Shown: positions 2,140 to 24,931 of the stretch, piece after piece
How the letters are laid out: each line of letters starts with the position of its first letter
Position numbering within the stretch: the first letter of the stretch is position 1
Source of the DNA: Styela clava
Taxonomy: Eukaryota
NCBI RefSeq assembly: GCF_964204865.1
Contig: NC_135261.1
Coordinates: 7,502,001-7,566,000, forward strand
Length of the DNA stretch: 64,000 nt
Reading direction: 5' to 3'
Position numbers and translations under genes: made by a program
The notes under the pieces: generated by a model
The model's input: only the letters and a program-made list of their open reading frames with translations
What the model was told of the DNA's origin: nothing
The model's database searches: none

Positions 2140-5100
2140 CTGGAATAGAGTGCTATGAAAAGACAATAGTACACAAATTTTAAGAAGATTAATGAGCGAA
2201 TTTAAGTTTGAACTATAGTCAGTGTTTGGCTGCTACGAAAAAATTCATTAGCGTCTTAGACAGGTATGTGAGATATAGAAATCTAGTTTTCTAATAATAA
2301 ACGACACAGAAATATATTATGATTTCAGTCGAGGCCGTACTACTTGTACTAAAACGTACTGGGATAGACTGTAAGAAGATGGTTGTGCACTCCTGCTCTA
2401 AATATTGAGAAATTGTCCTATTGTATAACTCACGTCTCATTGATTTGCTCGGCGCCAAGGAGACTTGAGGCCGCGCTGGGTGAAGCACGAAGAACCGCAC
2501 TGAAACTGCACTCTATCTGCAATACTGACAACCGCAGAACTATTACTCTCAAATTGTATCAGAATAATTGGATTGAAAATGTACAAATGAACAGTTTTCA
2601 AAATTTTATATCAAATTATCTTTTCACAATGTAGAGCAGAGTAGGGTTTTTAAAATCATAATTTGCTTCGCATATGAATGTTGCGTTCCCTCAGAGTTGT
2701 ATTATGCCGTATGAAAATCTACTCTCGTTATTCCTCTGAAAATTAAGATACCATCAAGCAAAAGCATGGCGGGTGATGTACACCGTAATTGAAAAAATAT
2801 CATTCAAAATTTTCAAACACCTATACTCATTTCTTCAACTGTGCCACGCATTCTAATTACTGATATTTTCAAAATTCTAATTTACAAATAAATCGAAATC
2901 CAGATGCTGATTTGATCTCAGCAGTCAGGACGTTATAGATCAGACAAAAACTTTGTCAGATTTCACAAAAAACTTCACATTTTCTAATTTATAGTATTTT
3001 ATAACCATTATGTCCTCCAAACTATTATGAATTAAATTTGTTAACTGTGCAAATATTCAATGTACTATAAAATCTTTAAAAAAAAAACAGACGTAATTTA
3101 CGACCAATATATCATTATCGGTATCCAATTTTAAAAAAGCTGAAAATAATTAATACACCGTTGCCACGTCTGCACTTCACAATACTGTATTTACTGGCAC
3201 TCTCCTCATTTTAAACATTTTCATCTTGTTGTTCTACGAAGCTGTTATTCGTCTGATTTATATAATATTGTATGGCGCACTCATTGATTTGCTTGGCTCC
3301 AAGAAGATGTGTGGGTGATGCACAAAGTGCCACATTGAAAAGCACCCTCCCTATCTGTAATACTGACAACCGCAGAACTATTAATCTCAAATTGTATTAG
3401 CAGAATTGGATTAAAAATGTATGATTGTGAAGATTTTCAAAATGTTATATAAATTTATTTTTTTTATCTTATATAAAGCTAAGTAGGTTTTTTAAATCCT
3501 AACTTGCTTCACATATGAAGCATGCTTAAATTGGCTTTATACTATTAGTAGTATGGGATGTTGGCAATATCTAAAAAATTAAAGATATGCTATTTACAAT
3601 TTATACTTATTTTTCAGATGTTACTGCGCCGTATGAAAATCTATCTTCTTTATACATTACCCTCTGAAAATTAAGACACCCTCAAACAAAGCATGGCGGG
3701 TGAGAAACAAAATAATTGACAAAATAATTTCATTTCAAATTTCAAACACCTCTCCTCATTTCTTTGACTGTGTCACGAATTCTAATTACTTGTTTTGACA
3801 AAATTAGAATACACAAATAAATAGAAATTGTGATGCTGATTTAAACTTAGTTAGGAAGCTAATGATCAAACAAAAACTCGTCAGATTTCATAACAAACTC
3901 TTCACATTTTCCTATTTCTATTATTTTATAATCATTATGTCCTCAAAACTATAATGCATTCATTTTTGAACTGCACAAAGGTTCGATGTACTAGAAATTC
4001 TTACTCATGAAAAACAGACGTAATTTACGTCCAATATATCATTACCGGTATCAAAGTTTAAAATAGATCAAAATAAATACACCGTTGTGTCATTAAAAAT
4101 TTTATATATTTTATTGGAAAATAACTTTATAATAAATAAATAAATATGATACATCATATTTTTTATCATATAAATATGCTTCGTCATATGTAAGAGTAGC
4201 AAAAATGATATTTTTGAATTTCGCCGAATTTTTGCAAAAAATCGAAAGATTCTTGATTCAGAATTGTTTATTTAAAATTAATAATAGATAATTTACAACA
4301 AAATTAATTATTTACATTTAACAATTTTACTTGTGGTGCACCCACAGATTCGTCTACACTTCATAATGCAGTACTTACCAACACTTTCACATTTTTAAAA
4401 CATTCTCATTTTTTTGTTCTACAAAGCTGGTAATCGTCTGATTTATATAATATCGGAGTGAAGTATTTTTTCATAAATTATTATCTGTTTTTGACAGAGT
4501 AAGTGTAATACTATCTGATTAAATTCGAGGTGATTTATGAGTTAAGTATGGGCGGAATTGCATAGGTTAATTGTCCAATTTTGAGGTTTGGTTATATCTT
4601 GTTATCTTCAAAACATTCCCTCGAAGTAGGTTTTCAAGGGAATCTAATATGATTGATAGCGTTTAAAACCGGGTAACTCTTTCTTGGTAATTACGTGTGA
4701 ACTTTTCTGGCAAATAACACCTATTTAATAAAAATTACGATAGAATTATTGAAACCAGTAAATTACGAAAGTTCTATTTGAAGACAATTAACTTCGCTAT
4801 GTAAATGGGGTGAATACTGGGACGAAGAAATTTGGGAAGTCTCTACCACGAGCTCACGTCATAAATTATAACTGGAAACATTACGAGTCATCTCTAAATC
4901 AAGGGGACACAACATGCGATCGCGGCGGTGTGTGTTTCAACTGCACTGTAAGCACAATGCAAGAATATTTGAGACGTAATTAAAGGTGGGGGCGTAATAA
5001 ACAGTCGTGGGCTATAGCACATTCGCGAAACTTGTTCCGTTTATAGAAATGGATCGTACCTAACCAAATTGTCTCCTAAGATTAAGGAAAGACCTTGACG

Positions 5101-5615
5101 ACCACCAAGCTCTCCCATCCCATCAGAAGATAAAATATATGTATTAGAATACATGTTTAATTGATTTGTAATAATCTTGTTTTTTTCACTTCACTTTATT
5201 TTTTGTATTGTCGGGTGCGATAATAATGTATGGAGTGCTACAAATGCGCAATAGTACAAAAATTATAAACAGATTAATAAGCGAATTTATCTTTGAGAAT
5301 GTCACTGTTTGGCTGCTACAAGAAAAAAATTCATTACCGTCTTAGGCACGAGTATATGAGATATGTGAATCCAAATTTCTAATAAAAAACGACCAAAAAA
5401 AAAAATACTTTGATTTCAGTCGCGACCGTACTGCTTATACTAAAACGTACATGTAGGAACAAGGATGTGCACTCCTGCTCTAATTATTGAGAATTTGTTA
5501 TGTTGCATAGTTTACGTCTCATTGATTAGCTCGGCGCCAAGGAGACTCGAGGCCAAGCAGACTGACGCACGAAAACCGCACTGCAAAACACCCTGTCTGC
5601 AATCCTGTCAACCAC
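2140..5615 (+). repeat. Internally repeated block homologous to the 5' flanks of collagen-discoidin copies 3 and 4
   Basis: ~4570-5610 matches ~53620-54780; ~2530-3250 and ~3360-4450 match each other, ~54770-55320 and partly 42440-42675 and 53355-53480. Confidence 0.85.
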
Positions 5616-8222
5616 GGTTCACGTAACCGAGCAAAATTGAGCAAAATTTTTAGTAGATAAAAATTTTAGTAAATTTTAGTAGAGCAAAAAGTAGATATTT
5701 TCATTACAACACTCATTAGGCAATAGAATTCCTTTTTCAGAAAAAAAAAAAAAATTAATTTGCTCCAGTTTAAGGGTGAACAAACGGTTTTGTTTCGGGG
5801 ACTTCCTTATTTGGATGATATCAAGCTTTTCATTACTTACCTTAACAGTTAAACCTTTGCGCTATTTCACAGGTTTCGTGTTCGGAAATAAAAAATGAAA
5901 AACTTGCGACGTACCGATTATTGACAAATTCTGAGAAATATAATTATCTTGCGGCCTGTGTATTTTGATATAAAATGCATTATAACATAAAGCAATGAAT
6001 TTTAATTCTCAGACAGGAAATTTATTTTTTAAAAATTTAGGGCTCGGATTAATTCTTCGATTATCTGTTTTATAGCGAACAACCAATTTTATAATTTATG
6101 TAAATTACATCATTGGCGATAACGTCATCAATATTTAATATATTTATATATGCTTGGTAAATTTGTTTAATAGTCGTATATTTAATCTCAAATTGATTTT
6201 TTTTTATAATCATTTTCGAAATATGACCTTCGACGCACCAGTGAAAATATAATTGAAAACAATATAATAAAACTAATATAATCAAAGTTCAATTTATCAA
6301 TGCTTGGAAGGTATTGACCAATCGTTTGCAGAGAAGCATTCAAATAGTCGGTATATTCCTTTTTCTTTTACGGATCAGAGATCAACGTATTGACACGTCA
6401 TATCGGTATTTCGCTTTATGAGCATGTTGCGGGGTACGCAACTGTCATATATATCTGGGGGCTTCTGTGTAGGCTATGTATCACATGTCACAACTTTCGC
6501 CACGGGCTTCTGTACATGCTATGTATCACAAAGCATGACCTAGTAATTGCGAGTCGTGAAATAGAGATAGTTTCAAACATTGACAGCGCAAGTTGCTTTA
6601 TTAAATGACTGTAATGTATTCTGAGAATATAATGTTAACTGCCTAATATGCCAGATAATTAATTTTCTCAGACAGTTAGATTCATGCCATATATAAATAG
6701 AAACTTGCGAATATGCCCTTTCCGGAATAATATAGAAAGACTATGGTTACTGATTTCAAACAAAGGTTAACGCATGCTATCTGTATTTTAACTTTATGTG
6801 ATCTGTGAATCTTTTTTTATACATTAGATTGAAACTAAACGTCACTTCACCTTAAAATTTATATTTAACATTAGCCGTGGAATAAAGTTACATTTAAGGT
6901 ATTCAGAATAATTTATGTTTGTATTGAATTCATGGATTTATTGAAAATAAAATATATGCAGTATATGCACGACTCATTTGCTTTAGTCCGGCAGTTTCAA
7001 AACTGTTCTGATCTCGTTAGTTTGGACATGTAATCGAGGGCGCTAAGTGGTCTTCAAGACTACTTTGACATTTCCAAATCGAACCGGTTCATTGGACTGG
7101 TTTTGATGGACATGTAATCAGGCCTTATGTCTCCTGATGCAATAAGTTTGTCAAGCTGGTCTCTGATTTTTTGGCGTAAGTGGGACGGAAGAGGTCTAGT
7201 TTTCGAATGTATACCTTAAAAGATACAAATAACATCTACGGTCTACAAATAACACAATTAATATATTCATTTGTAGTATCAATTTTCTATACCAGCGGTT
7301 TCCAAACTTTCTGTTCGTGGGGCGCCAAATTATTAGGAAAAAACACACGGCGCACTTGGATAAAAAAAAATATACATAAATAAATAATAAACAGAAGAAC
7401 GATGCTTCAATATATAACCTCGAAAGCCAAAACGAAGTATGAAGGGAATGTAATCACAGTACACTACAGGTGCCGTAGTCTTCACGACTAACAAAAGCGG
7501 AACTGGCACAAGGTGCGCAAGTTTGGATGACGTCTTCCCACACTAAAAACGAATTCCATAGAGCCGACAGAAATTTGCGGAGAAAAGTTTGGAGTAAAGT
7601 CCAAGTGTGGTCGTTTAATAGCTCTCAATGTATTATAGCAATGAGTGGGTACCTATTCTGCGTGCTCTTACCCCAGTACTATTAAACGTACTTAAGTTGA
7701 GTGACCCCACTGACTCCCTCAGACGTCTATAAGCACGCAATAGGCTGTAATGCCAAATGTTCACATATTGCAGATTTGCACAATCGAATTGATCCAAATA
7801 CCTGATAAAGAATACACTCAAAATCTAAACGAAAGTATATGTGATGAAACTAAATTTCCAACTAACTAAAAACGATAAAACATAGACAAGCAACCCTTGA
7901 GAGAGGGAAAATACGTCATCAACATTTTCGCTTAAAATGTTGTACAAAAATATCACAAGGAAACGACTGAGGCAACGACTTTGTGCCAGGCAAATAACAC
8001 ACACTATTAACAATGAGTGGTGAAAAGTATTAGAATACACAGAAACTATTTATATGTAATCGCTAAAATAGCATAAGTATCACTGCATTATATTACAATG
8101 CACTACTTGTTCTGTCTTTATATCTCTTTGTATATATATGTCTTATGTGTTTGGCTAGACAACTCATGACATGTTCGGTAATAATGATGTTGCTCGGGTA
8201 TATTGGTAATCTTTCCTTTACA

Positions 8223-11200
8223 CTAAGCAGCTGGACGTATCTTCATCTCGGTGAATTTCAGTGAATAATGATGTCCCCTCCATGTAAACCAATTTATACC
8301 GTCCGCGTAGGACTTGTGTTCACCTTCATAGTATTTGGCGTTTAAATTGGACGTATGACAAGCACTATACCACCATGCTCCTTTGTGCGCCACAGCGCAA
8401 TTTACTTTTTCGTGCGTGTCAAGATCCCTATTCTTTGTCGTAAATTTCTTCCCATTTGTCCCACTGAAAGAATCGCCAGCGTTGCCCCAATACCCATTCA
8501 CACCTATTTGATATTTGACGGCATAGGATTCAATTTTAAACAATCTGTAACAAAATGATATGCATTTGAAACAGGCCATCTCAAAAGCAAAGAGATATTT
8601 ATATTAAACTGGTGAACGAATCCCTGGCGTGGGAATGGCATGTTTCTAATCCAATCTATGAAATAAAATTTTAGCTTTCACATCAGAAAACCATGTTCTT
8701 TGTTCACCCACTAAGATTTGTCTGCATTTACTCAGTGTGCAAATGAACACAATTTGAGTGTATAGTAATCGATAGGCTAATAAAGTCTATATAGCAGTGG
8801 TGACAAGTCGTTTACAATATAGCAAAAACAACTGGTAAATTAATTTGTTGATTTGTAAAACTCCCCCTTTTTGGTTACTTGTCAGCTGCGATTTCACCTA
8901 GTATTTTATCCACATTGGTTGTAGATCAGCAAGTTTGCTGTTCAGCGAGTTTTTGTTGAATATTTGGGCATTATTATTCAAAGACGAAAGCATTATAAAA
9001 TGTGAACAACGGGCTTACGAATATTTTGCATATCTTTTTTGTCCTTCCCAATCTTCCATGTCAACTCTGAGTTCATATTTTCTTCCATCGGATGTTAGTT
9101 TGTGCAGGGTTTCAAGTCCTGAAAGTAGTCATAAGATATGTATCAGGTGCCGAACTCTAGAAGACCAGTAGTCCAGTAGTCCAACAGAAACCTACCTAAC
9201 CAAAACTCCTTTTCTTTGTTTCTGAATCCGAGCACAAAATCGTCCCATCCCCGATAAAAATCAACCGATCCGTCTATCCGGCGTTGAAATACCTGAATAA
9301 TTAATATATAGGCAAAGCGATAAATGTATAAAAAAATACTTTGTTTATCATTGAAATCTGACTTATTCTTCTGAAAAACAAAATATACCTCGGGGTAAGA
9401 ATGTTGTTTCACTTATTAGACTTCGTAAAATTACAATACTTTCCGAGTTTGATTCGATTCACTATTTATTAAAAACTCGTATTGTCTGTAGTCGTTATAA
9501 CGAAGTCCATTACTCAATAAATGACCCGATTTCGAAATCAGACTTGAGAATGACGAGTGAATCGATTTGACTCGCGACGAGCAGTTTTGATATATACACT
9601 CAATTTAGTGCGATGTGCAAATTGTTTACTCACAATCCATCCACCTCCATCTGTCTCTAAATCACAGAAAACTTCTATCTCACGACGATTGTGATAAATA
9701 TCGAATAGGCCTCCGTTTCTGCTCAAAATCTTTGCATTATCCAGCGATACTTTTCTGCAATCAGATGTTTCGCGTATATGACGTTCTTAACAGTAAGTAA
9801 GTTGGTGATAATTGAGAAATTATTTATTGCATTTCACATTAAGAGACATATTTATATTTACCGTTTGAAATAAAATTTCAATACCCTTTGATAGCTCTCC
9901 TTCGATATTTGACATGTGTGATGAAATTTCATTTAATTGTTCAGAATGTTCACGAAGTTGTCGAATTTGCTCTGATAAATATTAAAAAGATGTCTAAACA
10001 GTTTCTATCAAAATTTTGGAAATTTCCTAACCCCGGAATTGGCGTGTATTCACGCTGTCCTCGATTCAATTTAGGAGTTGTTATCATCTAAAACAGGGGT
10101 CGTCAACCTACGGCCCGCGGGCCGGATCCGCTTAACTGAATTATAGTAACAAAACAGCTGTTGTGACGATTATATTTTTACGTAACAGAATTTATTGTGA
10201 AAAACTTGTAGACTAAATTATATTATAATCTAACAAGTATAAAATTCACAATTACTCGTTAATGAGCCTATAATTTAATTATAATTTGACAAATGGCAAC
10301 AAAACGCAGAAAAGTTGATGCTAAGTGCAAAGGGTTCAATGGCGCCGAAAAAATTCAAATATAATTTTTTGAGATGCAATGCAATGAGGAAATAAATCTA
10401 TTTTCTATTCGAGAGATGTATGCTTGATTTTTATTATAAAAAGTATCATCCGTTCGGTTTTCAACTTTCTAAAAATATGTGCGGCCCGCCAATGACTTGC
10501 AAGTTGCAACCCTCAATTTTGGCCTGCGAGCGACAAAAGTTGCCTACCCCTGATCTAGACTGTTCTAAATATTGCTGGAGAATATTTGCATTGTTATTAA
10601 ATTAGGGGAAAGTGGGGAAGGTTGGGACACTTTTTTTCTTTTTCATATTTTGAGCCCTTTATTCTGCACATTCATATGACTTTGCGGGATTAATGCAGAG
10701 AGGGGTAAATGTGGTTTTTATTCAGCGACTAAGAAATTTGCTCGCGACACACATCTTACCACCAAAATGCTTTGAAAAACGTTTGTCAAGTGTCCCACTG
10801 TACCCCATTTGTGGGGCACATTTGGACAGACCCTGGGGCACAATGGGTCACTCTGTTAAAATTCAACGAAGTATGCCCCCAAAAATAAGCAATCAATCAG
10901 CATAATCGTCTAAAGAACAGGGAGACCTCAAATTTCAAGATTTAAGATTTTTAAAATCAATGTTTAACCGAAATATTTCAGATATTTCACCAAAAATTCG
11001 CTTACAAATAAAAATATTTTCTAATCCGAATCTAAATCTGGAAATATTTTTGATTCTCGAATATATTTCATATTGGACCATGAGTCGAAAGATAACATGA
11101 TGTTACGTAAAAATATAACGCATCTCTAGGTCTCTAAGCACTTGTTGTATCAAACACTGTCGAATTGTGCCATGTAGGGCATGTCCCACTGAACCCCGGT

Positions 11201-13345
11201 CCAATGTTCCCCATAATCAACAAATATCTTCAGATCATCCCACGGCGAAATTCGGTGGGCACATCCAGTCGCCAACGTTATAAATATTTCACGGTGGACT
11301 ATAGCTGAAAGATATCAGACAGTGGTTTGTCACGTTGAAAAGGCTAAGTTAGAAAAAAGAAAAAACTGGAAGGGTGAAATTTTAGTTTCAACCCCTCAAA
11401 ACCAATTTCACCTCATAGCTTGCGTCGCTCTACCCGTCCGCTGTCCGTTTGCGGGGACGTTGTAACTCACCGAAGGGCGGATTGAAACATCAAACCGCGG
11501 AACGGATTCCGAATATAGTATTAGTGTGAGAGCTGATTTTCCACTGTGCCCCATGCCCCAACGTGCCCCACCTTCCCCTACAACACTTCGTGATTTACGT
11601 CATGAAGTACGAAATACAGATTCACCAGGGTCATGAGTAAAGCGACACTTTAGCGTTAGGGCAATAGGTTATTCGATACAGGCAACGCATACCTTCACGA
11701 TGTATCATATTGTTCCACACGACAAATGAGAATATCGTCACAACAACCATAATTCCAGTTGTGTAAAATGCTTTTCGGAGTGGCGAAACTGAAAATTAAA
11801 ATGGTTGTTATTTTTCAGCAACTATTTACTCAGTTTCGGATTAAATATGAAAATTATGAGACTTGGTTTTTCTTTTCGGGAGTGTAGGCTACAATCGTTG
11901 GATTCGGAGGGTTCGCACGAGTTCGAACGAACCCGTTTTTAGCATATCGCTAGTATTTTCGGAGCAATATGTTCGCCATGGCTTTCTGAAATGACGGAAT
12001 CTTTTGTTACTGAGTCCAACATAAAAGAAAACCGTTTAAACTTTTGAATCCCACCACTGGTCGTCTACTCAAAGCAATATACACTGTAGACATGGAGTTG
12101 ACATTGGAAAATGAATATATATTGATATTAAATCTATAATACCCACGTCAGGGCAGTAATGAGACAAGTACATGTGTGATTTTCCATGTTTCTACCAGCT
12201 CAGCATTACAACTCAGCAATAAAATTTGAGAAACCAGACAGTAATTTGAAAAGAATGGTGGGTTTTACCGTCAGCATTTTTATTAAAATCTTCTTGTTCC
12301 AATTCTTTCATTCTATTTTCATAAGTCTCAATTCTTCTTGTTAACTCAGCATGGATGCCTGAAAATGTAATGTAGAATATTAACGGACAATCAGATGCTG
12401 ATTGACCCAATGAGATAGTCAGGCTTTTCCATGGGAAATATTGTTCTGATGTCCTATCCCATGGGAATCCCATTCACATCGACAAGGCCTGGGGGTTTCA
12501 TTGGGAAAGGTGTCCCATCACAAAATAAATAATACATACACCCAGTTAAACTAAAAAAATTAAGCCACGCCCCCTTTCTAGAATTTGTCAAGTCTCGCGC
12601 CCTACCTCGCAAATAACGAGCTAACAATAAGCTATAACAGATAGTAAGTCGAATGTACGTTTTATTCAAAAACACGTTGCAAATACGTGGGTGGAACGTA
12701 AATAATGAAATAAATGAAAAGTTTTGAAATGTAAAAGAGGTCAAAATCAAATCTAACAAATATCTCGATTTTTAATGAGCTTAAATAATCTTCTACGCTC
12801 GAGAACCTCAGCATTGTCTGTATACAAGCATATAAAGAAAAAATGGGGAGTAAAAAGGTATAAAGTTTAGCTTTGACGTATCACGTTGCTATGACATAGC
12901 ATCTGTCCTGTGGAGAATACAAATGTGTGATGGACGTTTCCTGTGGACAAGCCGTCTGGATATATATGATTCATTCCCAGTTCTATGCTAACCTGAATCG
13001 CTTGTTGTATTCGATACATCATCCACCAGGTTGGATATGGTTTCCACATTCTCTAAATCTTCTCCTACCTTTTCGATCTGAGAATTAGAAATAAGAAAAT
13101 TGATGCAAAGCAGATATTTTTCTCTGTTTGCCAAGATAAATCCAGATATGACATTGAATCAAAGAGCAGATATGATTATGGTTGCACAAGACGCCACACG
13201 AGGGCGTCAAAGTGTGGATAAACACACAGATTTCAATAAATCCATATACCGTAATTTAAATTCAATAAAAATAGCCGCATTATTTGTTTAATAACCTACT
13301 TACTTTTCCAACCGACTTCTTCGCACGATTATTTAACGCAGCCAT
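8223..13345 (-). CDS. Type II transmembrane fibrinogen-related-domain (FReD) lectin, ~356 aa, FIBCD1/ficolin-like C-terminal domain
   Basis: Manually spliced GT-AG exons, all in frame (1071 nt): 13345-13304 ([14 protein letters not shown]), 13077-12993, 12358-12269 (coiled-coil-like), 11788-11693 (hydrophobic [19 protein letters not shown]), 9971-9885, 9785-9634 (SDC...[13 protein letters not shown]), 9292-9196 ([16 protein letters not shown]...EFWL), 9118-9019 (GLETLH...[12 protein letters not shown]), 8544-8223 (GDSF...NCA...[14 protein letters not shown]...GINWFTWRG...TEMKIRP). The FReD motifs are unambiguous; the start codon is less certain. Confidence 0.9.
10094..10552 (+). mobile_element. 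hAT (Buster/SPIN-like) MITE in FReD intron
   Basis: TIRs caggggtcgtcaac ... gttgcctacccctg; imperfect 8-bp TSD atctaaaa/atctagac; internal [16 protein letters not shown] transposase-start remnant; same family as 30629-31087. Confidence 0.8.
10605..11578. mobile_element. Non-autonomous DNA transposon with TA target duplication
   Basis: TIRs ggggaaagtggggaaggttggg ... cccaacgtgccccaccttcccc, TA on both sides; repeated subterminal TGGGGCACAnTGGG-like motifs in both orientations. Superfamily not assigned. Confidence 0.75.
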
Positions 13346-14104
13346 ATTCCAAAGCTCCTGAGGACAAAGGTATGGCAATTCTTTCGCGAGATGCTAAACG
13401 CTTCACCTGATACCTCTAGTCTAGACAATATAAAACAGAATAATGGTAACAATACAGGTATCAGTTCCAAAGAATGCACCGACGATAAATGCGCTGTCAC
13501 GCTTTTCAGCCGAAACAAAATACTTCAGGCATAGCAGGGCTATTATCTCATATCTACAACGGGCAAAAAACTTTACTTTTAATCTATAACTCTAATGTAA
13601 TATGGGCAATGCGTCCAAGTTTTACACGTATATAATATGATTCTGATTCGTTACGATATTTGTGGACAGTTATTTTTCCTCATAGTATCTGAAAATTCAA
13701 ACTTATTTTAAAACAATTTTCGTGTCTGAAATATCCGTAAGTCTCGCCAATACGAAACAAGCAGACCCTGAAATCGTCCAGGTAGAACAGTTTTGAGTTC
13801 CCACGCTCGATATTTCAGAATGTATGACATTCAAGACAGCCATTTATACGCCAGTAGGCATGAGTGAAACGTGCAAACGATATATATAATATAGTATCCA
13901 TAGAATTCTTTTTGATTGTAGAAAAATATAGTTGGTCTGGAATTTAACCATTCGTATTAGCTAACACCGGTAGCGCGTTTTCTAAGTAAACTATAGTAAC
14001 ATTGTAATTTGAATCTATATTCGCCATTAATGCTAGTTCTGTTTTATAGCAAAGAATTAGAACCATATAAATAATAGCTGAAACATTTTAAAATATTTAC
14101 AACA
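13346..14104. promoter_or_regulatory. Putative bidirectional promoter / 5' region shared by the FReD and C-type lectin genes
   Basis: About 760 bp between divergent start codons; TATA-like catataaata near 14064 and tatataat near 13629 and 13883. Positional inference only. Confidence 0.45.
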
Positions 14105-17100
14105 ATGCCAGCAATCGAAAAGAACAAACCATCAAACTTTATTGATAAAGGCAAGTATTCAGTGACTAGCAAGTGATTTAGTGTCATGAGAAAATATGGT
14201 GTAGTGGGATGACAATATAACTATTTTAAGGTAAAGGTGATTGACAAAGGGATCTTCCTAACATGAAGCATATTATAATTGACTCAAGTTTATTCGATTA
14301 AATTTATTTTATACATGAAAATAGTAATGTTCCGGAACGTCTTTATTTACACATTTTATATTATCAGTCTCGTTGCATTGCATCTTCACATATTCTTCTA
14401 AATTGAGTTGATCCAATCGTTTTACCTTTGTTTTCAGTCTCTTTGGACAAAATCAACAAAATTGGAGACAAAGTTGAAAATCTTGACAAAATTATGAGAA
14501 CTGTCAAATATGTTGTGTCAGAGAAAATGAAGAACACCAGAGAAGATTTTCGCAGAGATATAGTTGAAGGTTCAATTTATTCTTATGTAATATGTATTTG
14601 CCTTCATGATTACCCTATTCCTGGAGTGGGCAAATGGGTCCTTCTAATGTAAACTATGCATAAAAATCGTTTCTGTTTCAGTGGTACCTGAACGTTGTTC
14701 GTCCTTTAGTATATGTATGTTTCGCATAATTCACATGCTGTGACTGATAGATCTATTATGCGAAGCTAAGCGACTAAGCGTAGTAAGCTGAAGCGTCTTT
14801 AATCGAAAAATTCCAACCGTATTCACGGAGCATGAGTCGAATTGTCGATAAATTGTGGTTTCGTATTTTCTATATGTACATAAGGCGCGTCGGCCCATTA
14901 GGTGAAACATAGTTTATTACGTAAGACGGCGATCTGTATGGAAAGGATTTACATATTTATCCCGGTGGAGAGGAAAGCCGATAGGACGGCTTATCCATAT
15001 GGCGAACCACGGCCTCTCGTCCAATTACCATTCCAAGTCGGGTATGGGATTAGTTATATTGTTTGTTTTCGGAAGCATGGTGGTGGAGGAAGCCGTAACC
15101 GACCAGCGGTAACGTGAACCACCCAACGACGGCGAGGAGTCCAGCAATCCTCTCGCACATAACCATCTCTGCATGGGATTCGAACCTGCGAACCCACGCA
15201 GAGTAATTAGAGGTGCGGTGGTGAGTGTATTCCTAACGCTTAGCCCGTTGAGCCACGCATCCGCGCAGCGTACCGATTCTCTGATCTATATACATTAGCT
15301 TTACAAGACACACGATTGATTTGTGCGAAAAAATGAATTTTAAAAGTGTTTTATTGTCCGTAAAATTCGGTAATCGAAAGTGTAAAAACTGTCTACTGAA
15401 GTTGGCTGCAATTTTATATTCTCCTATAATTTCACCATCGCTTTGCCACAGAATTATTGCAGCTGAATTCTACTGATTACTTTATGCCTGAAGCGTGAAC
15501 TAATACCGATTCCATTTGAAATCGTAATTTCAGTCGTGTCAATAATTCCAGAAAACTTTAATAGTGCAAGTTATTCCAACTTTACTTATCTTCAGAGATT
15601 CAACGGAACGTATCATATATTACTGTGCTAATAATCTCTGCAAGTCTGGTAACGTTGGCAATGCTTGACATTTGGACGGTACTACCGATGGTAGGTAAAA
15701 CATGGTTTTTTGAATTTACAGCTAATCATTGAAGAAAAATATAATTTTTGTTTTAAATTATATAGTTGTCCAAACGGAAACAAATATTAGGATGCAAAAA
15801 GTGAAATCGGGATTAAGTGATTTGCGGCAAAATCTGGAAAATGCCGTCAAAGAAATGGAATCTACAACAGAAAGAAAGGAAAACAAATTCATGGATGGTA
15901 TATGGCATTCATTTTCATTCGAAGATCAACGTTTCAAATTTTATCTACTAAATGTTGAAATTTTTTTAGATATTCTTCAACTGAATACAAGCATTGCATT
16001 ACTGAAGAGTCAACTAGAGGCGAAAATATTTACAATTCAGCAAAATGTCAACACTATCGATTCCAAACTAGCTGATGCTGTATGTTTTTTCATGTTATAA
16101 TGTCGGCTACCTTTAAATTCGACACTCTCGTATTTAATAAAACGTAACTATATGATATGGTCTTTTAAAACGAATAATTAATTTTCGCTAAATCACCCCT
16201 CAACGCAAAATCTTTGCCCACATCTGCGCAAGAAGAATGCAAATATTGGCTGTTGCTTTAGATAATAAAAGGTGGAGTTGACCAAAATGAAAACGTCCTG
16301 TTCCTGAGGGAGTCAACCGTGGCTAGCCGGCGGCGGTGTGGCTCAACGGGCTAAGCGTTAGGAATACGCTCGCCACCGCACCTCTAATTACTCTGCGTGG
16401 GTTCGCAGGTTCGAATCCCATGCAGGGATGGTTATGTGCGAGAGGATTGCTGGACTCCTCGCCGTCGTTGGGTGGTTCACGTAACCGCTGGTCGGTTACG
16501 GCTTCCTCCACCACCAAGTCCGTGCTTCCGAAAACAAACAATACAGTAAAACTAATCCCATACCCGACTTGGAATGGTAACCGGACGAGAGGCCGTGGTT
16601 CGCCATATGAATAAGCCGTCTTATCGGCTTTCCTCTCCCCCGGGATAAATATGTAAATCCTATCCTAATATTTTCATTGAAAATATAACGAGGATTGCAG
16701 ATGTTCTGAGTTTTTATGCAGCGTCATCAGTATGTTTCACGTTTAGATAGAAACCGCCCGAGTAATAAAAGAGAAGCAAAGAGCTCAAGCATCAGAAGTT
16801 GGGTGGTATATTGCAGCAAACAATAAGATGTACAGGCTCCTGTACACTCAAGTACAATATCAAGACGCGGTAAAGAAATGTGAGAGCTTGGGTGCCATGA
16901 CCGCATCTGCGGGATTGAGAGATGCAGGAATACGAAAGTAAGTACCATGTAGAATAAACATTATTTCAGTAGCCAGACAGGCCTGTTATGGACTATGAAA
17001 TATATATATAAGACGTCCTTCTGGTTACCTACAATGAATTAGGCGAACTAATTCATTCTGTCTGTGCACCAAAAAATGGATCGGAGGTAAAAAGACTTGA

Positions 17101-17743
17101 ATTAAAGGCGAATTATCACCCGTTATCAGTCCATTTTGAGTATCCAGTTAATCCTTCCCGATGTATGCAATAATATTTCAGCAATCTCAACGCACCTATC
17201 CATTATCTATTAAGTTACGTTTGCCACTGCTTGAAAACCAGTAATATATTGTTTTTTCGGGTCTCCACTCGCCTTGAAATACCTTCTTCCTCATTCTGTT
17301 TGCACACAAATGTATTTTTAGAATGGTGAAAAAAATTACTGATTGCGATAGGAAACCTCATAACGTGTGATGATTAGTGAATAGTGATTATTCTATTATT
17401 GGATATAAGTTCGTGAAAACGATACTGTAATTTTCTCAATATATATATATATAATATAATATTTTTAACTGTTTTTTTTTTCAGTGAAATAACATTGAAA
17501 TTATTACAAGGAAGCAACAGTCACGTGTGGGCAGGTTTGACAGACATTGCAAAGGAAGGCCACTGGGTATGGGCCGATGGAACGCCATCAACTCGTTCTA
17601 ATACCAACTGGATGGGCAGGGAACCAAACAACTATCGTGGTGTGGAGGATTGTGCGGCGATGGATAGAGCGCGGGGGTGGCAAATTAATGACGTTCCATG
17701 TTACGATCGATGGTACATGCTTTGCGAAAAAGCGAGGTTATAA
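14105..17743 (+). CDS. Type II transmembrane C-type lectin receptor, ~322 aa, EPN-type carbohydrate-recognition domain with coiled-coil neck
   Basis: Exons in frame (969 nt): 14105-14150 (GC donor AAG|gcaagt), 14438-14569, 15596-15694 (hydrophobic YITVLIISASLVTLAMLDIWTVLPMV), 15766-15897, 15970-16079, 16747-16937 (GW...YQDAVKKCESLG), 17485-17743 (VWAGLTD..KEGHWVWADG...W...EPNN...EDCAAM...INDVPC...LCEK). The first exon is least certain. Confidence 0.88.
14944..15262 (-). mobile_element. tRNA-derived SINE, same family, inverted orientation
   Basis: Reverse complement closely matches 16326-16668 (gggattcgaacc B-box at ~15175). Confidence 0.85.
16326..16668 (+). mobile_element. tRNA-derived SINE (~340 bp)
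   Basis: A-box TGGCTCAACGG (~16339), B-box GGTTCGAATCCC (16408-16419), atcct-repeat tail; further copies in the window. Confidence 0.85.
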
Positions 17744-18387
17744 AATTGGATATTGGAGATCATTTAGTTCAGGCGTGCCACACTCCGCGCGTTGTAAGAC
17801 ATGTCTAATATTTAAAATACGATGAATGCCCAACGTAACATAGTTTTTTGCTCACGAAATACGGGCATTTCGGTATCAATTGACGTCGACAATACTCATC
17901 TTAGCGATATATACAAATTTACAATTTTTTTCACGTTTCATCTCACGTTTATTAATTCGGAAATGTGAAACCTGTATTGAATTTTGGCAATTCTTTCAAA
18001 ATGATTAGTATGGTATGGCAAATTATATTTTCTTGATGTTTTTTAATCCTTTTTATGTTATCTATTGGCTTGTACGTGTGTGATAGTTTGTACGGTTCAA
18101 ACAATTCCATATATTTTTGCTAAGTGAACATGCATTTTTCTCTTGTAAAATCATTTTATTCAAATGTTTCACTTTACATAGGTTTCATTCGCTGTTCCAA
18201 ATTTATAATCTGGATTTGTTTTATTGACGGCAAATTCGATTATGACGTTCTCGAAATAAACATATTGCTTTGGACTATTTCTATCAAAAGATTTCAATAT
18301 GATACTTTAGGCTACTCCATTCATACCGGACGATCGAACGAAATTGATCCCACAATCATAATCCTATCCATAAAGTCTTTTGGTACT

Positions 18388-18700
18388 TAGGATAGGATTT
18401 ACATATTTATGCCTGGGAAAGGAATGCCGATAAGACGGCTTAATCATATGGCGAACCTTGGCAACTCGTCCAGTTACAGTCCATGTCGTGTATGGGTTTA
18501 GTTAGCTAGTTATTTTTATTTAGATGGATGGATTTGATGGTAGTGGAAGCCATAACTGGTCAATAGCTACGGGAACCACCCTGTGGCGTCGAGGAGTCCA
18601 GCGGCATATTTATCGAATCGAACCTGCGAAGCCAGCAGGGTAATTAGAGGTGCGGTGGTGGGTGTACCGCTTAGCCTTAGCCGGATGCGCCACACCGCCC
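18388..18700 (-). mobile_element. tRNA-derived SINE, diverged copy
   Basis: taggataggatttacatatttat tail and gtaattagaggtgcggtgg core match the other copies; a more decayed fragment lies at ~19610-19720. Confidence 0.75.
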
Positions 18701-20317
18701 GAGCTGATGAACTTAATGCGGGAAAAAATAAAAATAGAAAAATGGCAAAAATAACTCTAACATTCCATAAATGCTAGTTTATTCGAAGACAGACCGCAAG
18801 AAAAATATAATGTACAGAAAATGCATAAATTCACCAAAAACCCTAAATCCCTCCAGCTAACAAGTCTACATCGGAATGAGTAAATTAAAGAACTAAAATA
18901 TCCATTTTGGCATCCACTTCCACATCCTGAAGTTTTAATTACAACTCCATATTTGTCAAAAAATAATAACAAACTAAATAAAAATAAACAAGTTATCACA
19001 TGATTTTAAAACAAAAGCAGAAACCTGCTTGTGTATGCTAAATACTAGAATAAGCAAAAATGATATTCAACCGAAATTGGTACAATGGTAACAATGATAC
19101 AACAATTGTGTGACACTTGTGGCTCCACATAACAAAACTCTAATTGGAAAACAATACAATTTGTAGTTGTTGAATTATCAAATATATCTCTACAATTCAT
19201 ATCAAAAAAAAATTCACCGACATCTGATTAATTATAGCAATCATCTATGAGTTTGAAATATCACAATACGCAACACAATGTACAAATATCATGCTAAATT
19301 TTTACATAGTTCTAGCAAACCACCAAAAAGAGAGTAATTTATATAACAATATCTAAATAACTATTATAAACAGAAAAACCCTCACATTTCAAAGTTATCG
19401 TCAATATGACTTAAGAATATGATAATAATATTTCATTTGGAATATGGAACAAAAATTTGGCCCCATAGAAATTCATGGTGTTCAAGGCCATAACTGCTAA
19501 TATTCATTTGCACTATATATTCACCAATTTGAAAAATAAAACCAACGAGTTTAAAAAAAATACTGTCTGATCAACTGTGACAAGAAAAAGGTATAACAAA
19601 ACTACTCAAATAGTAGGATAAGACAGGATTTTTGTATTTATATCAAGATATGAAAGTTCGTAGGATGACTTAACACATGGTGAGCAACGACTTCTCGCCT
19701 AGTTACCATTCCAGGTTTGATATGAGAAAAGTTTATCTTGTAGTATACTAGACTAAATCAATTTCATTTGAAAACTGAACAAAGTGTTTAACATGCTTGT
19801 AAAAAAAGATAGTCCAGTTTTTAGGTACAGACATGCCACGAAGAAGCAGGCACCAAACTATAACAGCCCTACTCACAATGCTATCTGAACACCTTAGCTT
19901 ATTCTCACACAAAATATCACACCAAAACTAAAAGCAACACCACTTAGAGTTGACACTCAGGCATATCATAACTAACAGAACATTTTTCATCCTTTTCTAT
20001 TGGTTACAAATTGTAGATAGAACTTGCATATTTAACATTATCACAACACAATAGTAAGAAACTGGCAGTTTTAGAAGTTTCAAAAATTGCAAAATATCGC
20101 TATTTTTTCGTATCAGCAATGATTTGATTTAGTTAGATTTCAAAATTTGATCAATCGTTTTCACGATTACGCAGTATTAACAGATCCATAATTGTTTACC
20201 AAGCAAGTTGAAAACTCATGCCAGATATGGCAAAAACTGAAAAAACAAGTAGTAATGTCCTGAATTGAATCAAAGACAAAACCGACAAAAATACTTGAAT
20301 AAAAAAGATAGATCAAC

Positions 20318-20650
20318 CAGGGCTGTAGAGTCAGATTCTGGAGTTTTGCATGATTTCATTCAAACTGGAGGCTGAGATTGAGTTAAATTTCTAATTCTGG
20401 AGTCCAAATTTTGAATCCTCGAGTTGTAGCCAGAAGTCAGATTTTTAATGATCTAAGTCAAAATTTTTAGCAGCAAAGCATGATTTTTCCTTGCATTTTT
20501 AAAAGATAATTGAAAATCATGTATAAACCAAAGTTTTTGTTATCAATGTTCTGTTTTCTTGGAATTGTTTAGTGTTTGGTGAGTCTAAATTTAACCCGCG
20601 GCGTTGGAGTCCGAAATCTAATGTAGACTTTCTCAGACTCCACATGTTTA
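20318..20650. mobile_element. MITE with GGAGTC-type internal repeats
   Basis: Starts cagggctgtagagtc, ends gactccacatgttta; 8-bp TSD agatcaac/ggatcaac. Confidence 0.6.
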
Positions 20651-22159
20651 GGATCAACTGTTTACATGAAGCAAAGAGTATTTGAGCAGTAAGTATGTAT
20701 AACAGGTTCCAGTTTCTTAGCTTGTCTTAATAGACTTCACAAGAAGATTATTACTAAATCAGTAAAAACAAAAGTATATCAGCTTAGTATAGTATTCGTG
20801 TACCCAGTTTGTTTCAGACATTCCTGCAAAGTCTTGTATATATTTCAACACTTGAAGTTGGTTGCAAATATGGTAGCAAGTGGCACAAAAACATATAGAC
20901 ATGAAAGAATCACTTCTCGGGCTGAAGCAGGACATTGTACAGATTGCTGAACCGAAGATCTAAAAATTATTCGAACAATATTCCTTGGAACATGACAAAT
21001 TATCGAGTTTAGGAACAGACACAAAAAATAAAATAGAAAATATAAGAGCGCAGGCTAAGATGATAACTCACAGATAAGCATAACGTAAAAATCAAATTCG
21101 AATATTTCCAAAACGCAATATAGCATATACCTCATTTTGGTATCTGCATCATGGGCATGATATTTGCTGAAAATTTTTTCAAAAACGTAGCGAAGACATA
21201 ATTTAATCACACATCCTTAACATATTCAAACACGTTTCCCATATTATCGTATTGTATCCCAATATTTTCACCTCCTTCCTCAATTTTCTAATAATATTGT
21301 TGACTTTCTACTCTGAGTGATGTCTTTTCTTAAACTCCTTCAAAATCATTATTTGCATTTGCCAATCGTTGCTAACTTGATTTCGTACGCTTTTCTAACA
21401 AATAATACATAGCTAACAAAACGACCTGGTCCCAGACCCATGTTATAGAACTGAAAACAAATACGGAGCATATTGTATTGTAACAACAAAGATAACATGT
21501 CGCTGACATAGAATGACAGTTGAGCTAAAATTCATCGAACACAAAACACATTAATATGGCAATATACACGGCCAAAAATTAATAAATGACAAAACTGTTG
21601 TCACGACAATTATCCGCGTTTAGAAGCAGATTTTCATCATTGAGTTGATTTGAGATTCGTGATTTACTAATTACATAATTTTTGTTCTCATAATATGATA
21701 AAGCAAAGACCGACCATCAGATATATTGAAGACTTTTCACAAGATATAAACATATAGGTCGACTGTTTCATTTGACTAACTGTTCTAAGCAAGATCAATT
21801 TAATACATTTTGTACCAAAGTTTTTCAGGAAACAAACTGTTCGAATACACTTACCTTAACAAATGTTTAAAAAGTTCCTGAACTATTATACCTTTTGACA
21901 AGGGGCGATGCTCAAGTATATTAGCGCGAAAAACAAAGTAAAGCAGAACAGTCGACAATTGACGAAAATGGATTGTTTTATCTACACGCACTATGGATAA
22001 ATAAAAGTTTAAAAACAAAATTATAAACTTAACATTGGTTGGCATGCATTCTAGTTAAGTCGTGAAGCTGAAGAATTGAGATCAACGAACGCCATTCGCT
22101 ATAACACCACCGCACTGCAGATTGGTATTTACTGTTAATCTAAGTTGATTCCATGTCAG

Positions 22160-24931
22160 TTACAATAAACCATGACACATTCCATCAATGTATTCCAATC
22201 TCATGCACATGTGACCATACCATGTTTGAGGATAAACTCGAATGTATCGGCATATTATTACATTCGGAAACATGTTGGTGACCTTGGTTCTTCTATCATT
22301 ATTTCCAGTAAATATCTAAAATATATAATAAGGATCAAAAGTATCACAATAAGTTCAGTAGATCATATCAAAATATAGTAAATATAAGTGATAGTTGGAT
22401 TACAGTTGAGTATATATTAATCTAAATTAGGGGATTGCAACATTTTCTGTCGTTGGGCCCTATAACCAACTTCAGACATCTAGCTGGGCTACACAAAAAA
22501 TAGTTTTTTCATGTAAATACCGAATAAAAAAATTCTTGTTCAGCCTTACAGCTATAAAGGCAACAGGCAAACGGCCGAAGATTTAACGCAGCGACAAGAA
22601 TCATGTGAGCGCTTTTTTAAACATAAATGTCGGATTAGGATTTTATTCTTGATGAAAAAAATCTTGAGTGTTGACAAAGGCTCTGATATAAGTAAGAAAT
22701 AGCCACTATGAAGTGTAGAACTCCCCGCTTGTCAACAAATTTCTCTGATAAGAGTTTTTCATGCATTTTGCTGTCTCCTTGCCAAGTTAACTGGTATCTA
22801 ATTTAATTAATGAGTATAGTTTTATAATAAGTCACTATTTCTTTTATATATATATGTTTTTTATTTGAATTCCATATGAAAGACCCCAAATTCGCTGCTG
22901 ACTAGCTTGTTAACAATGACTAGAAAATCCCATATTATGATAAAACTGTTGAAAATCATTATTATTTGCAAATCGAGCTTGATTACTAAATACATCCTAA
23001 ATGCAGTTTTATAAAGGCAAAAAGAGTTTCGAGATACTATCTTACCTTGTCTGAACCATTCTCTTGTATTGTTATCATTGCGCTGGTAGAATTTCCATAC
23101 GATATTTTGAAAGACCGAACCCAATTATCGTTGCGTGCTCGTCCCTGTGTCACGATTCCTCCTATTGGTTTTGGCGCCTTGAAATATACCTGATGCCATT
23201 CTCCTATTGCACCTATAAAAATGAATCATTTATTTTAATATTCTACGAAGAGATCATCCCACTTACATTTTTTAATGCACACAGTCTAAATTCTATAATT
23301 TTGCAACAGGCAGAAGAACTTACTAGAAATCAAAGTTAAATCAAATAGTAACCACATTGCACTATAAGTGCAGAAAGATTTACCAGAAATAACTACTATA
23401 CGATTCATTGCATTCTGTGTTATATGATAGATATTTTTGACCGTGATAATGAACTCTTTCAATTTCATAATTGAGTGCGAAATAATTTAAAGTTTGTTTT
23501 GAAGTTTTATTGAGAACTTATGTACTTGTCAAATATGATATAATTTAACAAACATTCAAATAAATTTGTATAAATAAAAAATTTGGATAAAGACATAGTT
23601 TCCGCAAACGCGAAAATAGTATATTTTGAAGCGCAAACTGTCAGTGATTTTCCATGATTATTTATTTTAATTGTAGAAAATCAAAATAACTTACTTCTAC
23701 CAGGAATCCAAACAGCGTACTTTCCGCCAGAACGATCCACATTGTCCAATCTTCCATAATAAGCTTGATAACTGGGACCATCAAATGATGAAGCTGTGAT
23801 TTGTGAGTCAGGAATGATATAACGATTCTTGACACCCATGTAGCAAATCTCAGCTGAAATTAGAAGTGACCACGCTGTGTATGGTAGGCAATTTCATATC
23901 TTGATTGTTTTTAGTTGGGAGCATTGTAGGGAGACAGAACTTCGGAAACAAATGTGGGAACATGCGATTGAAACCATAATTATTTTATAAGTTTTTGATA
24001 ATATTTTTTCGTCGAGGTTAGATATATTAACAGACTATCGTATTTATTATGAGCAACCATAATTAATTCAGTGACATGAAGTAAAGTCTCTCAACCTTAT
24101 AATAAAAGTTGCCATTGTCATATGATTGCCGCTCAAAACGACTCAGTTTGCCTATTTCTCTAAAATGCTTTATTTATGCAATATTTATATTTATTTATTC
24201 ATGCAATATTTATGTCTGATATAAAAACAGTTATTGGCACAGAGTGTGCCGTACACAGATATTACTCTTGTTTAATTTCAATGATTTTGACATTAATCTG
24301 TTTTATTTTCAAGCAAATGATTGAAGCCGGAAAAGGTGGAAATATACAAATGCAATTCAAATCAAGATCTTCGGCATATGTTTGACAGCAGTGAAATGCT
24401 TACAATTTAGCATATTCTTCATGAACTTTTGACTCTTCAGGAATGAATCTGAAATGAATAAATTAGATGATTAACAAATTGTTAAAATATTTTGAAATTT
24501 AGAGTTTTAATAACAGTTCTGTCTTGAACAATACAAGAGTCGTGTTCAGTTTGAGGTGAATTTCTTTGCACGTTAAATCAAAAAATATTATATTGAGAAT
24601 AAATGATTTGTAATAAATTGAAATTTATCAATCTAATGGAAAAATCTTTCCGATATGATTCGTTCAAACAATCACCTTCCAATTTCCTCATTCTTTCTTC
24701 TAGGTGTTCCGCTGTTCCTGGTTCACCCCGTTCTCCTTTTATTCCGGGTAATCCACGTATTCCTTCATTTCCTCTTTTTCCTGGCCTTCCCTGGCACTGA
24801 CTCGAGTCACATCTGGCGAGACTCGCATTGCCGTTTGCCACCACGTGTGAACAAAATTCATACAATGTTGGCATGTGACATAAGACACAAGGAAGCAGCA
24901 ATATAGAACAGCAAACAACAAAAGAATTCAT
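22160..24931 (-). CDS. Secreted collagen + FA58C/discoidin-domain protein, copy 1 (260 aa)
   Basis: Exons 24931-24676 (signal peptide, 3 Cys, 9 Gly-X-Y), 24448-24404 (neck), 23853-23695 (ICYMG...IPDSQITASS...GRLD...W), 23212-23046 (EWHQV...GIVTQGR...WVRSFKISY), 22315-22160 (IFTGNNDR...CRYIRVYPQTW...MRLEY..GMC). 783 nt, in frame, all GT-AG. Confidence 0.92.

Follow-up and report, generated by a model that had tools for sequence, protein, structure and literature searches.

Two head-to-head type II lectin genes of Styela clava with faintly similar cytoplasmic tails

In the genome of Styela clava, a fibrinogen-type (FReD) lectin gene and a C-type lectin (CTLD) gene start back to back and encode N-termini that look alike, which raises the question of whether their tails are related by descent and whether the two products work as a pair. 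The locus lies in a stretch of 64,000 nucleotides (contig NC_135261.1, positions 7,502,001 to 7,566,000, or C16:7502001-7566000; hereafter the window), which is AT-rich (GC content 0.30-0.40) and gave zero matches in an Rfam scan. An earlier note on this DNA had proposed that a common cytoplasmic module is fused here to alternative sugar-recognition heads in a co-regulated, possibly hetero-oligomeric paired-receptor system. Below, the fibrinogen gene of the window is termed FReD-1, its paralogue FReD-2 and the neighboring C-type lectin gene CTLD; retrieved proteins carry numbers such as P0008, P0003 or P0113, and own-genome searches cover the 377-Mb S. clava assembly. The explanation that we favor, with about even confidence, is that these are two ordinary type II lectin genes encoding solo receptors, whose tails are alike by faint common descent via exon shuffling.

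Both strands were read for the gene models, and frames were verified by script. FReD-1 (minus strand, 13345..8223) has eight exons totaling 981 nucleotides (nt), with 326 codons and a single terminal stop, and CTLD (plus strand, 14105..17743) has seven exons with a combined length of 969 nt (322 codons). Apart from CTLD intron 1 (GC-AG), every splice site is canonical. The layout described in the earlier note is correct: the genes are head to head with 760 bp between the two ATG codons (14105-13345), their transmembrane (TM) exons measure 96 nt (FReD) and 99 nt (CTLD), both in phase 1/1, and neither gene encodes a signal peptide. Hydropathy analysis gives hydrophilic N-termini and one hydrophobic segment each; in FReD, the first 30 residues are hydrophilic and the segment covers residues 48-72. 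Because a signal peptide is absent, the TM segment is single, and the C-terminal heads bear disulphides, both proteins are predicted to have type II topology, which supports the earlier assignment of both as type II lectins. The positive-inside rule gives a weak N-in signal for FReD and is ambiguous for CTLD. Both genes, in this divergent layout, are part of a cluster of lectin genes.

The heads belong to established families. Pfam places Fibrinogen_C (PF00147, profile positions 14-220) on the four 3′ exons of FReD and Lectin_C (PF00059) on the last exon of CTLD, with zero Pfam matches on the tail exons of either gene. Among solved structures, FIBCD1 (4m7f, E=1.1e-32) is the nearest match to the last FReD exon, with tachylectin-5A and ficolin-2 behind. 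As described in the sections of PMC3908420 used here, FIBCD1 comprises a short tail in the cytoplasm, a TM helix, a coiled coil and a polycationic region, together with a FReD, and assembles as tetramers. The FReD-FIBCD1 alignment was mapped to the residues named in those sections, the chain offset of 235 being checked on eight residue identities. FReD retains Asp393 and Asp395 of the calcium site together with Cys414, His415, Tyr431 and Ala432 (FIBCD1 numbering), and resembles FIBCD1 in its short tail, TM helix, probable helical neck, C-terminal FReD and calcium Asp pair. It differs in that Tyr405 and Trp443 are both replaced by His, a polycationic run is not evident, and the tail is unrelated as far as tested. 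The neck comprises 35 heptad-like residues in which a marked basic run was not seen; in FReD-2, the Tyr405 position is occupied by Phe, and ficolins and tachylectin-5A carry Tyr at the Trp443 position. NCBI names the FReD protein "microfibril-associated glycoprotein 4-like", and its best database relatives beyond the two FReD copies ("ficolin", "MFAP4-like" and "ryncolin-like") are at most 60% identical, over the head only. Several additional type II FReD lineages exist in S. clava, as judged from a whole-protein search with P0008 in which 19 matches were read.

The closest solved structure to the last CTLD exon is Mincle (E=2.6e-15), with MRC2, collectin-11 and DC-SIGN behind. The EPN motif, the Glu of VEDC and the ND of calcium site 2 align with Mincle, the Trp of the WND motif is replaced by Ile, and the four canonical Cys residues are present. 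The protein, called "hepatic lectin-like" in the older NCBI annotation, shares with the group II type II C-type lectins (Mincle/CLEC4E, DC-SIGN/CD209, ASGR) a tail, a signal-anchor TM segment, a neck and a single C-terminal EPN domain, and differs from them in that WND reads IND and the TM segment has no charged residue for an adaptor. Inspection of the CTLD tail by eye for ITIM (immunoreceptor tyrosine-based inhibition motif), hemITAM, YxxPhi, di-Leu and tri-acidic motifs found none; its VKYVVS stretch misses the ITIM consensus, with Ser at +3 in place of a hydrophobic residue. Type II membrane CTLD proteins have been described in ascidian blood cells, according to the parts of PMC5465252 consulted. 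The tunicate CD94/NKR-P1-related receptors (Botryllus BsCD94-1, Ciona CiCD94-1) are likewise type II CTLD proteins; the S. clava gene keeps the EPN calcium/sugar site. Because type II FReD (FIBCD1-like) and type II CTLD receptors are established kinds, and both genes already exist as NCBI automatic models, the genes themselves are ordinary.

What is unusual is the similarity of their tails. The two 20-mers aligned in the earlier note are present in the sequence, each spanning the exon 1/exon 2 junction of its own gene, and are identical at 9 of 20 positions (ungapped BLOSUM62 score 49). The Smith-Waterman score of the tails is 54, compared with 25 ± 5 for shuffles; three shuffling schemes of 20000 each attained it 6, 5 and 4 times. 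Exon 2 of FReD and exon 2 of CTLD are reciprocal best non-self matches among 4105 stop-free segments of the window, scoring 44 with the next match at 36 and, in the reverse direction, 42 with the next at 35. Used as coiled-coil controls, the necks scored 25-32. A comparison of the CTLD tail with the N-terminal 120 residues of 121 further retrieved FReD-family proteins placed FReD-1 (54), P0113 (50), FReD-2 (45) and P0004 (42) at the top, over a background in which the next score was 39, the 95th percentile 33 and the median 24; the tails of two other S. clava type II FReD proteins (P0081 and P0108) scored 17-23. The helical hydrophobic moment of the motif is high in CTLD (reached by 59 of 5000 shuffles) and not in FReD (737 of 5000). 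As for the controls suggested in the earlier note, the alignment scores above nearly all shuffles and above the coiled-coil necks, and its excess over chance is moderate only. We regard the similarity as real in the sequence and above average coincidence, but weakly significant, with homology at the edge of significance.

Independent information on the FReD tail comes from a direct duplication of window 3756-21114 at C16:7572891-7586931 (~17 kb, 85-95% identical, dS ~0.2 in the FReD gene). An own-genome search found FReD exon 2 in two copies in total, the second at C16:7582471-7582554, 67.5 kb away and 96% identical in amino acid sequence; CTLD exon 2 is single copy by such a search. All eight exons occur in FReD-2, 85-98% identical in nucleotide sequence and each with its AG/GT sites preserved, and they form a 325-codon open frame with one in-frame 3-nt deletion relative to FReD-1. 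Exon 1 is identical at 41/42 nt and the TM exon at 94/96 nt. Exons 1 and 2 together are free of indels (119/127 nt identical), as against 195/218 identical positions and 50 gap columns in intron 1, and contain six synonymous and two non-synonymous differences. The corresponding ratio of non-synonymous to synonymous substitution (dN/dS) is 0.08, compared with 0.33 for the whole gene and 0.42 for the head, and the binomial chance of at least six synonymous changes in eight is p=0.002. On these counts, the tail is under constraint and is the most constrained part of the FReD protein. The NCBI model P0003 corresponds to FReD-2 and P0008 to the window FReD (326/326 aligned residues), both with the N-terminus encoded by FReD exon 1, so that paralogue constraint and the NCBI S. 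clava models lend support to the predicted exons 1 and 2.

The copy has cleanly lost the CTLD body (window ~14111-17765). Still present in it are the CTLD 5′ untranslated region (UTR), the ATG with the next few nucleotides, and the stretch that begins 22 nt past the stop; the difference is a deletion of the CTLD body in the copy and not an insertion in the window locus. FReD-2, beside the deletion, is intact and under purifying selection. The intergenic region of the window is ~89% identical to that of the paralogous locus across the first 300 nt.

Transcript data were drawn from sequencing runs. Thirteen runs hold parts of the region, nine of which, with small shares, are guessed to be RNA; contigs from four runs (X1, X2, X5 and X6, from three studies) were aligned to 9870-15869, with 2-nt slack at the joints. 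CTLD is represented by a 1383-nt contig in X1 and a 1341-nt one in X2, which align to 14055-14148, 14436-14567, 15594-15691 and 15764-15869; the joints of exon 1 to exon 2 and of exon 2 to the TM exon were seen in two of the four runs, and that of the TM exon to exon 4 in three. A FReD joint between the TM exon and exon 4 (11693->9971, GT..AG on the minus strand) was present in X1 and X2 (2/4 runs), in contigs that end at 11776. Because these match exon 4 without mismatch, they derive from the window copy. Both genes were thus found in X1 and X2, and CTLD without FReD in X5 and X6; contigs cannot rank expression. On the point of transcripts with other first exons, raised in the earlier note, CTLD exon 1 is confirmed by spliced contigs, but FReD exons 1 and 2 have no reads in the four runs.

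The tail was also sought on other heads. When a profile built from both exon-2 peptides was run against 1.84 billion representatives at a cut-off of E<=0.001, it matched four proteins, three of them from S. clava (P0002, the CTLD protein; P0003, FReD-2; and P0004). The fourth, P0001 (1076 residues with a 13-fold repeat), aligns to columns 21-40 only and was treated as spurious. P0004 (XP_039252601.1, "lactadherin-like") is identical to FReD-1 at 68/74 positions of tail and TM segment; beyond the TM segment, it continues into the last part of a collagen/neck segment, with an F5/8 type C domain (Pfam 5.4e-21) after that, and its head matches the first gene of a collagen-discoidin array in the window at 88-98%. 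In this assembly, its tail is encoded only by the two FReD copies. The accession number of P0004 comes directly after that of the older CTLD model (P0006), which suggests that the two genes were neighbors in the older assembly. We treat P0004, a predicted transcript, as an annotation lead for the tail on a discoidin head. P0113 (NCBI "FIBCD1-like") is a type II FReD gene at C3:20256683-20260000 (plus strand) whose tail is related to that of CTLD; its AKKS, ENIE and YVV..K[LM] line up with the other tails. Its IEYVVL, aligned with VKYVVS of CTLD, fits the ITIM consensus. No CTLD or discoidin match was found within 10 kb on either side of the P0113 gene, and a coarse first-pass search of the S. 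clava genome found no further tail members. Extra matches of the two-row profile on C19 (E 0.4 and 1.7) were unrelated open frames, and those of a five-row profile (E above 5) were one noise match and one TM-like segment on C9. The NFYEIP and NIYETP stretches of P0081 and P0108 stand in unrelated tails. The related P0113 tail, and the FReD-type tail and TM segment that P0004 joins to a discoidin head, make a common tail module spread by shuffling plausible.

A number of results weigh against common descent of the tails, and several of them speak for the alternative that a chance alignment of Lys/Glu/Asp/Ile/Val-rich amphipathic segments has been found in genes that are merely neighboring type II lectins, an explanation that is possible yet doubtful. 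The motif was spotted post hoc by a scan of the whole window. Shuffles that keep the hydrophobic pattern reach the tail score in 55 and 17 of 20000 cases, and with the longer NCBI tail (P0008) the counts rise to 18 and 17 (plain) and 195 and 125 (pattern-keeping) of 20000. In single BLASTP comparisons, the CTLD tail gives E=0.018 with P0008 and 0.028 with P0004; in a search of 5218 segments with a hidden Markov model of the four non-CTLD tails, CTLD exon 2 ranks second among non-training segments with E=0.1. The tails of FReD-1 and P0113 score 44 over a background of 43 and 40, which is not clear, and the Glu of the motif's "EN" is Lys in FReD-2 and P0004. The extra exon of the NCBI FReD model, tried as a second block of similarity (EDF...), contributes nothing, with a score of 21 that 6618 of 20000 shuffles reach. 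Gene structure points the same way: the tail intron of FReD is in phase 0 after codon 14 and that of CTLD in phase 1 in codon 16, five aligned residues earlier, while that of P0113 is in phase 1 in codon 12. The TM exons of FReD and CTLD are unrelated, giving no reciprocal match among the window segments, and a repeat search of 11500-15800 for an inverted duplication of the 5′ exons returned 25 short pairs, none of which links the two exon 2s. Setting P0001 aside, no member of the tail family was found outside S. clava in the representative search or in tail word searches. Read depth was 0 over 12870-13669, which covers FReD exons 1 and 2, in all four runs; P0004 is an automatic model that was not placed on DNA, and its junction would in this assembly need a purine-rich acceptor (AAAAG/GA) inside a collagen exon; and on the head side, the acetyl pocket S1 (Tyr405, His415, Tyr431, Ala432, Trp443) is kept at only 3/5 positions in FReD-1, with both substitutions to His. 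Chance, however, has to account for a reciprocal best match among so many segments exactly at the place, strand and phase that require a 5′ exon, for the four candidate family members being the CTLD tail's top four among 121 natural N-termini, and for the low scores of the control type II tails.

Common descent could be taken further, to a portable tail module, [AD]-K-[KV]-S-x2-[KD]-[IL]-x-[KN]-[IVM]-[GE]-[ED]-x2-[EK]-N-[ILV]-[ED], which in one member precedes an ITIM-like I-E-Y-V-V-L and which is shuffled onto FReD, CTLD and discoidin heads and feeds one cytosolic partner. We consider this unlikely. The claim of a common cytoplasmic module on alternative heads gains some backing from the P0113 tail and the discoidin head of P0004, but is limited by the borderline homology; the profile search for other heads proposed in the earlier note did recover that discoidin head, but its matches, the spurious P0001 apart, are confined to S. 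clava and the test profile stayed at E=0.1. Still less probable is a co-regulated paired system in which FReD and CTLD hetero-oligomerize or share a cytosolic adaptor via their common tail. The head-to-head layout is consistent with such a system, as are the 760 bp between the ATGs, the gap of no more than 710 bp that separates the FReD ATG from the start of the CTLD transcript (a contig reaches 14055), the presence of both transcripts in X1 and X2, and the strong constraint on the FReD tail; a shared bidirectional promoter for both genes is possible. On the other hand, the duplicate locus lost CTLD and kept a constrained FReD, P0113 has a related tail and no CTLD neighbor, CTLD was seen without FReD in X5 and X6, the X5 contig is frameshifted by an upstream donor in the CTLD TM exon, and the necks, which would mediate oligomerization, are dissimilar. 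The loss of CTLD at the paralogous locus, the solitary P0113 and the CTLD-only runs argue against FReD and CTLD being an obligate pair. Together with the unrelated TM exons and the differing tail introns, they leave the proposed co-regulation, hetero-oligomers and paired-receptor system unsupported.

Under the favored explanation of two ordinary genes with faintly related tails, FReD would be FIBCD1-like, with a tail, a TM segment, a short helical neck and a FReD in which the calcium site and some of the acetyl pocket are preserved, and CTLD would resemble the vertebrate group II (CLEC4/hepatic lectin) receptors, with a tail, a TM segment, a neck of ~80 residues and an EPN domain. By analogy with FIBCD1 and the CLEC4 receptors, each protein is most likely a solo, neck-oligomerized, glycan-binding surface receptor. 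The tail similarity is most likely a faint remnant of the common descent of a cytoplasmic tail exon, which probably circulates among S. clava type II lectin genes by duplication and exon shuffling; such shuffling is permitted because the TM and neck exons are in phase 1/1. In the tail, Lys flanks a Ser and one stretch is amphipathic, and a role in sorting, phosphorylation or docking would be a guess. AlphaFold2, run on single sequences, gave models of P0006 and P0008 whose mean pLDDT (predicted local distance difference test) values, 43 and 39, were too low for use, and the ESM Atlas gave no feature match, its structure matches being generic long helices. In a limited literature search, neither these S. 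clava genes nor a tail common to FReD and CTLD receptors turned up as the subject of a publication. The coordinates of both genes are collected in Table 1.

Table 1. Features of the FReD-1 and CTLD genes and of the region between them (window coordinates)
Feature	Position	Strand	Details and basis
FReD exon 1	13304..13345	-	ATG at 13345, 14 codons, ends in phase 0; GT donor and frame
FReD exon 2	12993..13077	-	85 nt, carries the motif core; AG/GT sites
Extra cytoplasmic exon	12269..12358	-	90 nt, phase 1/1; in NCBI model P0008; AG/GT sites located
FReD TM exon	11693..11788	-	96 nt, phase 1/1; hydropathy, contig joint
FReD neck exon	9885..9971	-	frame and splice sites
Fibrinogen_C exons	9785-9634, 9292-9196, 9118-9019, 8544-8223	-	Pfam PF00147 on all four
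Divergent intergenic/promoter region	13346..14054	.	between FReD ATG and 5′ end of CTLD contig
CTLD exon 1	14055..14150	+	5′ UTR from at least 14055, ATG at 14105, 15 codons + 1 nt
CTLD intron 1	14151..14437	+	GC-AG; two contigs (runs X1, X2)
CTLD exon 2	14438..14569	+	132 nt, phase 1/1; carries (V)SLDKINKIGDKVENLDKI and VKYVVS; both joints in X1, X2
CTLD TM exon	15596..15694	+	99 nt, phase 1/1; joints in runs X1, X2, X6
CTLD neck exons	15766-15897, 15970-16079	+	frame, splice sites
CTLD domain exons	16747-16937, 17485-17743	+	EPN, E, ND, four Cys; Pfam PF00059

P0008 carries 30 residues beyond the FReD model of the earlier note, encoded by the extra 90-nt exon (12358-12269). This exon has zero read cover in the four runs, and its counterpart in the paralogue is 77-80% identical, degenerate, with an indel, and absent from P0003. 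Upstream of the FReD ATG (window 13348-13372, viewed on the minus strand), the sequence tttgtcctcag/GAGCTTTGGAATATG resembles a splice acceptor. Because it is in frame with the ATG, a further upstream 5′ exon may exist there. The best pair of the repeat search joins this stretch of FReD 5′ UTR to the CTLD exon-2 acceptor (13348-13372 / 14423-14447, 25 nt, 80%) and was taken as chance. Two high-depth repeat stretches with many partial contigs and loose ends lie in FReD introns (window 10070-10670 and 12470-12870).

The CTLD transcript has in-frame stops upstream of its ATG, and its intron 2 (14570-15595) is of the GT..AG type. At the third joint, contigs of X1, X2 and X6 run from 15691 to 15764 with one extra "A". 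We read this as 15694/15766 with a T>A change at 15692, which yields the "MEV" seen in P0006, the older NCBI protein, where the reference has "MVV". The TM exon ends in tandem GT donors 4 nt apart (window 15690-15694), of which the upstream one is at 15691. The T>A change abolishes this upstream donor, and the X1, X2 and X6 contigs use the in-frame donor; run X5 joins 15689/90 to 15765/66 via the upstream donor, with a frameshift and a stop 12 codons later. NCBI lists a TM-less CTLD isoform X2 (P0005, starting MQKVK), which may be related to the upstream-donor form. The older NCBI model P0006 includes exon 1. The current NCBI isoform X1 (P0002) is identical to our model at 288/288 residues; because it begins at an internal Met just past the motif, the first 34 codons, which bear the motif, are excluded from its coding sequence. 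The CTLD introns also contain a repeated element in inverted copies (window 14940-15245 and 16332-16668, with a further copy at ~18583-18700), with open frames such as GFEPANPRRVIRGAVVSVFLTLSPLSH. Its contig depth reaches ~87,000 in run X5, and it looks like an abundant transcribed repeat of a short interspersed element-like or tRNA-related kind.

Farther along, the window holds a tandem array of collagen-stalked discoidin genes (22163-24988, 36839-37141, 42067-42414 and 53037-53327, minus strand) that continues past both window ends. These genes combine a signal peptide and a brief collagen segment (GRPGKRGNEGIRGLPGIKGERGEPG) with a neck plus F5/8 type C exons.

Both loci invite comparison with known modular lectins. 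Collectins and ficolins likewise join a common N-terminal module to CTLD or FReD heads via phase-compatible exons; they differ in being secreted and collagen-stalked, whereas the common module in S. clava would be a cytoplasmic tail, with or without the TM segment. The neighboring array is modular in the same manner, with collagen stalks on discoidin heads. Paired receptors carry like ectodomains on tails of opposite signaling. Vertebrate paired immune receptors (KIR, Ly49, CLEC) resemble the present locus in being clustered, duplicating genes for lectin-type receptors, but are the reverse case, since in S. clava the heads (FReD, CTLD) are unrelated and the tails (weakly) alike.

If a single tail does serve all three kinds of head (FReD, CTLD and discoidin), this would point to an adaptor or sorting machinery shared by the lectin receptors of the vertebrates' sister group, and the locus would offer a concrete example of how tail and TM exons are shuffled within a lectin cluster. 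It would also suggest that early chordates wired many pattern-recognition heads, as chemically different glycan sensors, into one pathway.

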